This document shows, piece after piece, positions 58,489 to 61,125 of a stretch of DNA of 64,000 nucleotides. Source of the DNA: Histomonas meleagridis 2922-C6/04-290x. Its lineage: Eukaryota; Protista; Parabasalia. The translations under genes were made by a program, and so were the position numbers. Below the pieces are notes generated by a model. It was not told the DNA's origin and searched no databases. It saw nothing but the letters and a program-made list of their open reading frames with translations. The DNA lies in assembly GCA_020184695.1 (NCBI GenBank), contig JAANOX010000232.1:124001-188000 (forward strand). Direction: 5' to 3'. How positions within the stretch are numbered: the stretch's first letter is position 1; each line of letters starts with the position of its first letter.

Positions 58489-59091
58489 TTAGCAGCTGCA
58501 CTTGTTGCCCTTCTTTTCTTTTGACTCGATTGTAACAACTGCAGGCCCACTAGGTGCTTCATCTTTGATTGAATTAAGTGCAACTTGAGCAACACGCATG
58601 ATCATTTTATCAACATTGTCACCAGTTGTAGCAGAGATTTCAAAGTATTCAGCTCCATGTTTGTTTGCAACTTCTTGGCCTTGTTCAGTTGAAACAACTC
58701 TTTCGTCAACAAGATCGATCTTATTTCCAATTACAAAGAGAACAGGAGGAGGAGAAGTTCCTGACTTAACACCAGTTGCCCAGAAATCAATTTCACCGAG
58801 GGATGCTGAATCAGTAACTGAGAAAACGATAACAGCTACCTTTGCACCACGATAGTACATTGGAACTAATGTTTTGAACCTCTCTTGACCGGCGGTATCC
58901 CAAATCTGCAACTTCACTGTTTTTCCATCGACGTCAAAAGATTTAGAAGCATAACAAGCACCGATTGTTGGTTTAATGGATGGATCGAATTCACCGCTTG
59001 TTACTCTTGTGACGATACTTGTTTTGCCTACCATTGTTGTTCCTAGAAGAACAACCTTTGCTTCTGGTACTGTTTCAGCTTTTGCAGCCAT
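58489..59091 (-). CDS. Rab GTPase, Rab5/21-like
   Basis: GTTMVGKT, PTIGACY, WDTAGQERF, GNKID, C-terminal CSC. Confidence 0.92.
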   Translation of the reverse strand: MAAKAETVPEAKVVLLGTTMVGKTSIVTRVTSGEFDPSIKPTIGACYASKSFDVDGKTVKLQIWDTAGQERFKTLVPMYYRGAKVAVIVFSVTDSASLGEIDFWATGVKSGTSPPPVLFVIGNKIDLVDERVVSTEQGQEVANKHGAEYFEISATTGDNVDKMIMRVAQVALNSIKDEAPSGPAVVTIESKEKKGNKCSC

Positions 59092-59221
59092 TTATTTTTT
59101 GACATTGTTTGCACTTTTTGTTATTGTTCAAATTCTTATCGTCGTTCAAAAAGTTCGCTGTCACTTTTGCCGCAGGCTTTGGTCGTACGGCATTCAATTT
59201 GGTTGGTTCACATTTAGTAAA

Positions 59222-59884
59222 ATGTCTTGCAATAAGTTCGCTGCTTCAATGGCACAAACCTATGTCTCCGCTGCATTAGGTAGTGCTGTTTCTCAAATGG
59301 CCACACGTGGACTTAATGGTAACGCAAAACCATTCTGTGTTAAGGACGCTGTTATTCCATCAATGATGACTGGTACTGCTTTCATTGCTTACCCAGTGGC
59401 CGTTCAAATCCTTAAGCAAAATTGCCCAACATTCAAGAAGAACTTAGAAGATCCAAAAGGAAACAAAGCACTTGTTTACATTGAAGGCGGTGCACTTGGT
59501 GCTGCAATCGTTACAGCCATGAACTACCCATTAAGTGTTATCCAACAAAAGAAGAACTGCAAGGATGCATGCAATCCAAAGAATGTTCTTGGATTTTATG
59601 TTGATCAAATTGGTTCATCCATTGGCTTTGCTGCTACAAATGGTACCCTTTCTCCTCTCGTCCCAGTTCCAAAGAATTCACTTCTTGCATATGTTCGTAA
59701 TCATGCAATTGTCCATGCTGCTAACATTGGTGGAAAACTTCTTTCTGCACCAATTCATTATGTCCGCCATGGTACAAAACTTTCCAGCATGATCGGTGGC
59801 TATATCAAAGGAATGATTGGTGTTGACATCACTGGCGATGCTACAGCACACTTCAAGAATGTTCTTGGTTTTATGATTCAGTAA
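59222..59884 (+). CDS. 220-aa hydrophobic parabasalid protein, possibly of the hydrogenosomal membrane protein (Hmp23-like) family
   Basis: ATG at 59222, codon usage like highly expressed genes, several amphipathic or hydrophobic helices; the family call is from recollection only. Confidence 0.6.
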   Translation: MSCNKFAASMAQTYVSAALGSAVSQMATRGLNGNAKPFCVKDAVIPSMMTGTAFIAYPVAVQILKQNCPTFKKNLEDPKGNKALVYIEGGALGAAIVTAMNYPLSVIQQKKNCKDACNPKNVLGFYVDQIGSSIGFAATNGTLSPLVPVPKNSLLAYVRNHAIVHAANIGGKLLSAPIHYVRHGTKLSSMIGGYIKGMIGVDITGDATAHFKNVLGFMIQ

Positions 59885-60028
59885 AGATCACGCTAAGTCG
59901 TGAATATTATTTTAAAGTAAACAAATTTGAGGACTTACAATTTATCTAACTCTGTTTACACCTTGTAATAAAAAAGTGGTAAATTAAAAATTTTACAACT
60001 GTTTTTGAATTAACGATAAGTGTTAAAT

Positions 60029-60411
60029 CAAAACTTATCGGCAAGCGTGAACATTAAGGAACGGATTGAATATTTATCGTCTTTTTATAACGACCCTTGC
60101 GATTTTGTGTTGAAATTGATCGTTTTTGATTGAGAGGGCGTTCAAAAAACCGCTACGATGTGAGTGTCTTGCTGTGATTTTATCATCGCAGGAGTAGCCG
60201 CCTTCCATGTGCCAAAATAACAGAGTGGTTCAGCAGAAAAGGCCGAAGGCCTTATGCCGAACTACTCTGAAATGCACAGCAAGTACTCTCCATCCTATAA
60301 TAAATTCCAATTCCAATTCTACCTACAATTCACCCAAGACGACGGTTTATGCCTTTCATTTTACAACCATCCAATCCGTTCCTTAACGTTCACGCTTGCC
60401 GATAAGTTTTG
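60029..60411. other. 383-bp foldback element (structured ncRNA or MITE-like)
   Basis: 40-bp inverted arms 60029-60068 and 60372-60411 (39/40 match) enclosing nested helices; GC-rich relative to its flanks. Confidence 0.8.
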
Positions 60412-60627
60412 TTTTCATGTGAGAAATTTCCAATATTACACATGTAACAATAAATGTTTTAAAAAATATGTAGGTAACTAAAAAAAGTAACAAGGAGTAG
60501 AAAGAAAAATGTCAAAAGGAGATTTTTCAATTTCTTTAAAAAAAATTTAATTTAAATTATTATTAAAATGCCAATGAGCATTTGTTTGCTCATGCTAAAT
60601 ATTACTAAATTGTTGTGTGTTTAGTGT

Positions 60628-61125
60628 TTACTTTGACATGCTTGATAACCATGCTGGGATTAAAGCTGAGCAAAGTTGTGAAAGGATCATAGATGTAGTG
60701 GGATGGAATGTACTGAAAAGGATATGGGAGTTGATAAGAAGAAGGAAACAATAAAATGCGTTATTGTAGAAGAGAGTGAACCAAAGACCTTCAGATTCAC
60801 GAACTTCACCTTTTGCTTGTTTCTTTGCATTCTTTTTTTGGAGGTTCCTTTGTTTTATAACCCATTGAGCAATAAATGAGTATGCTACAGTAAGGCCAAA
60901 GACACCACAAGCATAAGCAACGACAACATAAGGGATGTGAACTTTAAGATCAATACCACCAACTGTTATATAAAGAATGATTCCAATCAAACTTGTAATA
61001 AGAGCAAAAGGAAGATATTTTATATGAACTGAAAAACCTGTTTTTCGGCTAACCCTTAAGTCACTATAAAGCGACTCCTGATCTTCTTCTGATTGAACCT
61101 GACGCGGGCTCGATTTTCTTTTCAT
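60628..61125 (-). CDS. SSR3: Translocon-associated protein gamma (TRAP-gamma)
   Basis: EVRESEGLWFTLFYNNAFY..FSTFHPTTSMILS parallels EVADYEATTFSIFYNN..NFNPTVNYILS. Confidence 0.8.
   Translation of the reverse strand: MKRKSSPRQVQSEEDQESLYSDLRVSRKTGFSVHIKYLPFALITSLIGIILYITVGGIDLKVHIPYVVVAYACGVFGLTVAYSFIAQWVIKQRNLQKKNAKKQAKGEVRESEGLWFTLFYNNAFYCFLLLINSHILFSTFHPTTSMILSQLCSALIPAWLSSMSK

Follow-up and report, generated by a model that had tools for sequence, protein, structure and literature searches.

A long inverted repeat of Histomonas meleagridis as a probable old copy of a dispersed, MITE-like foldback family

Introduction

MITEs such as Stowaway, Tourist and the T2-MITEs of Xenopus are small, non-coding elements with TIRs, strong hairpin potential and no transposase of their own. 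The repeat family of Histomonas meleagridis described in this study resembles them in all of these respects, and it is likewise dispersed through intergenic DNA near genes, in tens to a hundred copies. When the usual criteria for MITEs were applied, the family was found to be shorter than about 800 bp, to have conserved TIRs and to occur as dispersed copies with unrelated flanks. However, it differs from typical MITEs in that neither a TSD nor a parent transposon is detectable and in that conservation is higher at the centre of the element than at its outermost ends. The family is also old and small compared with typical MITEs, occupying about 0.06% of the genome.

Kolobok elements and T2-MITEs have a TTAA target site and an AGGRR/RR terminus, and Kolobok has been reported in Trichomonas vaginalis (PMC6004289). 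The copy at our locus is similar at its inner ends (TTAA-GGAAC...GTTCC-TTAA), and the terminus of the family, A-AGGAA-CGG, fits AGGRR, which is a short and weakly diagnostic motif (PMC6004289). However, the other copies keep only the proximal AA...TT. Their left ends read ATAA, CTAA or xxAA, the commonest left 4-mer being ATAA and not TTAA, and their right ends read TTGx or TTTT. Because only AA...TT is conserved in the other copies, we read AA/TT as part of the TIR and not as a TSD; the TTAA at our locus falls within an extended inverted repeat.

The FB-type foldback transposons are near-full-length imperfect palindromes that are able to snap back into a long hairpin, and the family shares this property with them, although it is much shorter and its arms are unique sequence without tandem sub-repeats (TRF returned only a 17-bp microsatellite). 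The same host genome contains non-autonomous IS481EU elements, which are likewise DNA transposons with TIRs of less than 50 bp (PMC10045372). The IS481EU elements of H. meleagridis (e.g., IS481EU-5N1_HisMel) have TGT...ACA termini and TSDs of 4, 15/16 or 24/25 bp (PMC10045372). We rejected an assignment to IS481EU, given that the termini of the family are AAGG...CCTT (CAAAAC...GTTTTG at the long arms) and that none of the IS481EU TSD lengths was found. MULEs and MULE-derived MITEs are a further point of comparison, and our locus is like them in having long TIRs. The MULE transposase domain PF10551 has at least 40 matches in the genome, several of them in open frames of 350-650 aa. None of these matches lies within about 8 kb of any TIR-core match, and no 9-11-bp MULE-type TSD rose above the null in six complete copies; one central-block copy on contig C7 lies 4.9 kb from a MULE domain.

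Results

The window, i.e., the whole stretch of 64,000 nt that was analysed, corresponds to C232:124001-188000, and the genome that we searched comprises 281 contigs and 43,133,364 bp from an attenuated strain of H. meleagridis (PMC8529796). The repeat search of the window identified a single dominant inverted repeat at the locus. Its left arm (60025-60071) and right arm (60369-60415) are each 47 nt long and are separated by 297 nt, and 44 of the 47 positions pair (94%). The earlier note on this DNA had placed the arms at 60029-60068 and 60372-60411 with 39 of 40 positions matching, which is exact, and the repeat extends further on both sides of these limits. The inner part of the left arm is the TIR core AAGGAACGGATTGAAT (60056-60071, plus strand), the left terminus common to the whole family. 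In alignment A1, the corresponding core at the right end (60369-60384, minus strand; C232:184369-184384) has one mismatch, GGAT for GAAT. The remainder of the left arm, an outer extension at 60025-60055, matches its mate at 60385-60415 in 29 of 31 positions.

The interior of the element (60072-60368, plus strand) is a long imperfect palindrome with nested helices. It is non-coding, and its ORFs are all short (28-75 aa). Within it lie the central block (60193-60319, plus strand), which is the best conserved part in the family and the source region of profile R1, and an apical hairpin (60221-60269, plus strand) in the form that we call flip, with the loop GAA at 60245-60247. The structural details of the earlier note could be reproduced from the letters: the helix 60077-60083/60336-60342 pairs at 7 of 7 positions, 60221-60231/60259-60269 at 10 of 11 with one G·U in addition, 60162-60176/60275-60288 with a bulge, and the apical AAGGCC-GAA-GGCCTT at 6 of 6 (60239-60253), while ACAGAG is present at 60220 and TGAAA at 60268. 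The short TTCCAA repeat TTCCAATTCCAA at 60305-60316 was also recovered. TRF reports it as a microsatellite, (AATTCC) x2.8, at 60303-60319 (plus strand), which is private to the window copy and does not occur in the consensus.

Just outside the left arm there is an extra motif, ACGATAAGT (60013-60021, plus strand), that forms a 10/11 direct repeat of 60400-60410 and pairs with 60033-60040 as a local hairpin of 8 bp; the earlier note had given this hairpin as 60014-60021/60033-60040, and all 8 positions pair. A related word, [AC]CGATAAG, is found four times in or beside the element, at 60013-60020, at 60033-60040 (minus), at 60072-60079 (minus, one mismatch) and at 60399-60406 (plus), i.e., twice in each orientation. 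This word could serve as a binding motif for a transposase.

Both strands of the element have very stable predicted folds. The plus strand has an MFE of -148.3 kcal/mol (z = -12.9) and the minus strand one of -157.4 kcal/mol (z = -11.1), in each case better than 100 of 100 shuffles. The two transition mismatches of the arms, 60053/60387 and 60069/60371, are A·C on the plus strand and G·U on the minus strand, and the single G·U of the apical helix sits on the plus strand. With G·U pairs on either strand and the more stable fold on the minus strand, there is no plus-strand preference. The earlier suggestion that the G·U pairs weakly favour a plus-strand RNA is therefore not upheld.

The element lies between two genes that converge on it. 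The upstream ORF (58976-59884, plus strand) encodes 302 aa without a Pfam family, and its stop codon is 140 nt ahead of the element. The downstream gene is a TRAP-gamma homologue (60628-61125, minus strand; PF07074, E = 9e-11) with its stop 213 nt past the element. The region C85:90106-94146 is a syntenic paralogue of both flanking genes, the 302-aa ORF being 80% and TRAP-gamma 82% identical. At this paralogous locus, the intergenic region is 2.5 kb long, unrelated and without the repeat. An empty site was sought through C85, but these 2.5 kb of paralogous intergenic DNA have diverged too far to be aligned, and none could be reconstructed.

As a query against its own genome, the 391-bp element returned 48 BLAST matches at 67-88% identity on many contigs, so that the copy-number check proposed with the earlier note yields many dispersed copies. 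A 23-mer from the left terminus had 23 genome matches at three or fewer mismatches, against none for a reversed control. The TIR 16-mer AAGGAACGGATTGAAT had 76 matches at two or fewer mismatches, against 28 for its reversed control, and 22 matches at 0-1 mismatch. Profile R1, a sequence-only profile of the central block made from alignment A2, gave at least 76 matches at no fewer than about 73 distinct places with E <= 0.001, a genome count that is a lower bound and for which 150 first-look candidates were scored. We estimate the family total, including fragments that consist only of ends, at 80-100 copies or roughly 0.06% of the genome.

The unit of the family is about 330-390 bp long and non-coding. 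In more than 10 copies the homology starts abruptly at AAGGAACGG (window position 60056), and the upstream flanks are unrelated, a few segmental duplicates excepted. The complete copies (the window copy, L002, L004, L010, L017 and L020) finish with the inverse, ...ATTCAATCCGTTCCTT. Because AAGGAACGGATTGAAT stands at the left and its inverse at the right of the complete copies, the family has a 16-bp TIR. Moreover, nearly all copies match the family profile on the reverse strand too, which identifies the interior as an imperfect palindrome. Numerous copies are truncated, and the truncation can affect either end. The neighbours are unrelated host genes, including those for TRAP-gamma, NlpC/P60, BspA-LRR, CCDC113, BTB, ankyrin, ribosomal P0, subtilase and kinase proteins. 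Two copies, L020 (C106, ~35 kb) and L072 (C142, ~67 kb), have their right flank in common, with a 42-nt indel right after the terminus. We regard these two as segmental duplicates; owing to the indel, the true right boundary could be placed in more than one way.

Identity to a leave-one-out consensus ranges from 66% to 91% across the copies and is 79.9% for the window copy. The tree of the copies is star-like, is without a well-supported branch and has a median end branch of 0.17; its star shape points to one old burst that was followed by neutral decay. The window copy was considered as a possible master copy, and its 79.9% identity to the consensus and its average structural preservation rule against this. 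In alignments A1 and A2, conservation peaks in the central block, which has a mean column identity of 61% in A2, and not at the outermost ends. For a MITE, it is unusual that the centre is conserved above the level of the outermost ends. Exact-pattern scans of metagenome contigs found no relatives of the family.

The outer arms set the window copy apart. The outer-arm 21-mer has no match elsewhere in the genome at three or fewer mismatches, save one probable chance match (L033), and the right end of the window copy as a BLAST query against the genome finds only itself; the outer arm was thereby ruled out as an independent repeat. When the 32 nt outside the TIR core were scored for complementarity, the five other complete copies gave values of -4.5 to -0.5, against a null of -2.3 ± 3.2 and a value of 28 for the window copy, and none of the five has complementary outer flanks beyond the level of mismatched pairs. 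Homology to the outer arm in other copies rests on two kinds of match. The right end of L023 carries TTCACTCTTGCCGATAA, which matches the outer part of the right arm, TTCACGCTTGCCGATAA, at 16 of 17 positions and in a homologous position. In addition, L020 at its right end and L028 at its left end (and, with one mismatch, L011 at its right end) have GCMAGCGT at a distance of 15-17 nt beyond the core, and the chance expectation of such occurrences in the examined flanks is about 0.002 according to a post-hoc calculation from base composition. The ends that bear the outer extension are mostly right ends. From these matches we conclude that some ancestral elements reached past the core and that they did so chiefly at the right end.

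Among the copies identified, a long and almost perfect pair of arms is seen in the window copy alone. In a copy that has diverged by about 20%, arms that are approximately 65-70% complementary would be expected, against the 94% observed. Neutral decay alone does not predict this match, and another process has to be invoked. Selection is one candidate. The simplest explanations for the 47-nt arms are that gene conversion or template-directed repair took place between the two closely spaced inverted repeats, or that one outer end was duplicated secondarily in inverted orientation; either could have produced the pairing.

In alignment A2, which contains about 18 copies, the apical hairpin occurs in two orientations that are reverse complements of each other, at similar frequency and with the loop GAA or TTC. 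The loop is GAA in the window copy, L004, L010, L017, L023 and L018 and TTC(G) in L002, L003, L005, L012, L025, L020 and others. Each member scores higher against the reverse complement of the other group than against the other group directly (18.8 vs. 10.3 for the window copy and 22.2 vs. 14.7 for L012). Because the alignment to the reverse complement is the better one, it is the whole hairpin of about 45 bp that is inverted, and not the loop alone. When the hairpin columns were left out of the tree, orientation required 4 changes, compared with a mean of 5.1 for shuffled labels, i.e., there is no clustering; a constraint that puts one orientation into one clade lowers the log-likelihood by 9.85 units (AU p = 0.06). 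Because orientation is not clustered on the tree, both forms of the hairpin appear to have been present throughout the burst, and this pattern hints at recurrent flipping of the hairpin.

Flip and flop forms are known from the parvovirus ITR and the poxvirus telomere, and template switches produce inversions in DNA hairpins; the family resembles these systems in having two reverse-complement orientations. In contrast to the parvovirus ITR and the poxvirus telomere, the hairpin of the family is internal to a chromosomal repeat and does not lie at the end of a replicon. The observed inversion, being one at the DNA level, is more readily reconciled with a DNA hairpin than with an RNA whose loops are sequence-specific. 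The flip/flop hairpin is a small curiosity for the evolution of DNA hairpins inside repeats.

The Rfam scan of the locus (E <= 10) returned only the snoRNA GlsR7, whose 16.6 bits fall short of the gathering score of 75 and whose E value of 0.85 is at the level of chance; 16 other copies gave no match at the gathering score. Accordingly, the check for a known RNA that the earlier note had proposed comes out negative, with no match near the gathering score at the locus or in these copies. RNAalifold found no consensus pair (0) in 20 aligned copies. When the MFE pairs of the window copy were mapped to the other copies, 65.6% of the cells were paired, compared with 36-46% in controls in which the 3′ partner was slid by 1-3 columns. 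This difference in retention indicates that the helices are ancestral. There was no compensatory excess, the pairs kept through two-sided changes numbering 58 against 33-77 in register-shifted controls. According to a leave-one-out consensus structure, the window copy retains 77% of the pairs and the other copies 60-91%. The interior of the window copy thus decays like that of the others, and this copy qualifies as neither a master copy nor a conserved gene. We infer that the ability to form a hairpin belonged to the ancestral element as DNA and does not reflect selection for an RNA structure.

Discussion

We consider 60025-60415 to be an old, decayed member of a non-autonomous family of class II (DNA) transposons, i.e., a foldback-type MITE, and we put the probability of this reading at approximately 0.8. 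The earlier note had named a foldback transposon or MITE as the alternative to an RNA, and it is this alternative that the dispersed copies, the TIRs and the unrelated flanks support. The transposase that moved such a family would have acted in trans, through recognition of the TIRs and subterminal motifs, and the family would have amplified in one old burst and decayed neutrally since then. A scan for TSDs in six complete copies, with boundary offsets of 0-35 and k = 2-15, found nothing above a mismatched-flank null; the best hint, 10-11 bp at offset 31, is gone against a mismatched-pair null. This agrees with the earlier note, in which no TSD was evident. Short TSDs may have eroded because the copies have diverged by about 20%. 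An autonomous element was sought as an inward-facing TIR pair within 20 kb, and none was found except a 10.5-kb pair on C83 that consists of two separate copies. Likewise, no alternative interior common to truncated copies and no transposase beside end-only fragments were found. A missing autonomous partner fits an extinct family but gives it no positive support. The family appears to be dead and is probably extinct.

The earlier note had put forward a structured plus-strand RNA, similar to RNase P/MRP, SRP or telomerase RNA or of a new class, and the Rfam, RNAalifold and compensatory tests all speak against it. If the locus were such a non-coding RNA gene, either of a new class or for a divergent form of one of the RNAs just named, its pseudogenes or paralogues would make up the rest of the family. 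The very stable fold (z = -12.9) and the strong conservation of the central blocks among the copies would suit this explanation, as would the pair 60226/60264, which has changed on both sides from the consensus (G-C to U-A), likewise in L015/L009. However, compensatory changes as a whole stay at the control level, RNAalifold yields 0 pairs, and Rfam is negative with its RNase P, MRP and SRP models included. Furthermore, the window copy is no nearer to the consensus than other copies, as a conserved master gene should be, and the strand evidence is divided, with the more stable fold on the minus strand and the G·U pairs shared between both. About half of the copies have the entire apical hairpin in inverted orientation, and the family has TIRs, which RNA genes do not need. 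We consider an RNA gene to be highly improbable. The least probable of the explanations that we weighed is a SINE-like retroposon that arose from a small RNA and spread by way of an RNA intermediate. The sharp 5′ end, the well-conserved 5′ region and the variable downstream extent of several copies would be expected of such an element, but Rfam detects no tRNA, 5S or 7SL-like head, there is no A-rich or simple-repeat tail, and TIRs are present. The copies are truncated at both ends and not only at the 5′ end, and around 5′-truncated copies with 3′ tails no SINE-type TSDs of variable length were seen. RepeatMasker, run with the Trichomonas library only, lists 23 retroelements that amount to 0.01% of the genome (PMC8529796).

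A different question is whether the window copy itself has acquired a role. This copy might have been co-opted as a source of a long hairpin RNA. In a transcript of it, the 47-bp arms would pair into a double-stranded stem, which would enter a small-RNA pathway, and the cell, or selection, would preserve the complementarity of the arms in spite of the decay of the interior. In favour of co-option, the arms are complementary at 44 of 47 positions despite a divergence of about 20% from the consensus, no other complete copy has complementary outer arms, T-runs end both strands just outside the stem, and the position of the element between two converging genes makes read-through transcription conceivable. 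However, the interior is preserved no better than in other copies, gene conversion between close inverted repeats accounts for the arms without any function, and a single locus of this kind is known. We regard co-option as unlikely. A composite explanation, in which a foldback transposon moved or was copied through a snap-back hairpin DNA intermediate and the window copy was afterwards kept as a hairpin-RNA/dsRNA locus, seems to us more doubtful still. If a snap-back hairpin intermediate did exist, it would explain why flip and flop forms occur without phylogenetic clustering.

With the foldback-type MITE as the preferred reading, the candidate "new structured RNA" is struck from the list, and an old, unannotated, lineage-specific MITE-like family in H. 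meleagridis is newly documented. In the published annotation, repeats were identified by RepeatMasker with the 'trichomonas' library only, which gave 235 DNA transposons and 0.23% of the genome (PMC8529796). The family is unannotated because that annotation relied on this library alone (PMC8529796), and an annotation of this design could not have detected it. Because the Trichomonas library missed the family, the repeat annotation of the genome is incomplete. Given the matches to the MULE transposase domain, at least 40 in number, the DNA-transposon content of H. meleagridis is probably under-annotated. This incompleteness matters for gene models and for hairpin-like "RNA" candidates elsewhere in the genome.

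The family also bears on rearrangements, given that one 3.6-kb inverted duplication terminates within a copy. The segments C17:436479-440101 and C17:447933-452370, which involve the copies L045, L046, L038 and L039, are inverted segmental duplicates of each other, with about 3.6 kb per arm, 99% identity and about 7.8 kb between the arms. The outer boundary of this duplication is inside a family copy, approximately 110-146 nt from the left end of that copy, and the hairpin-prone repeat may have seeded the rearrangement. An outward-facing pair of TIR cores at C11:40936 (minus) and C11:50097 (plus) is similar to the arrangement on C17; a megablast self-comparison of C11:39000-48999, a stretch that ends before the second core, returned no inverted match of at least 300 bp.

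Two minor observations concern DNA beside other copies. Next to truncated copies, a repeated sequence unrelated to the element itself is common to L007:543-1601, L021:1005-1531 and L027:379-796, at about 65-72% identity and at multiple offsets. The ORF that overlaps this flank repeat has no Pfam family in L007, encodes an ankyrin-repeat protein in L021 and a CCDC113/CCDC96 coiled-coil protein in L027. Beside the copy L006 (C70, ~276 kb), the ORF at L006:1896-2501 (minus strand) encodes an NlpC/P60 peptidase together with a bacterial-type SH3_3 domain, which is a bacterial-like domain combination in a eukaryotic genome.
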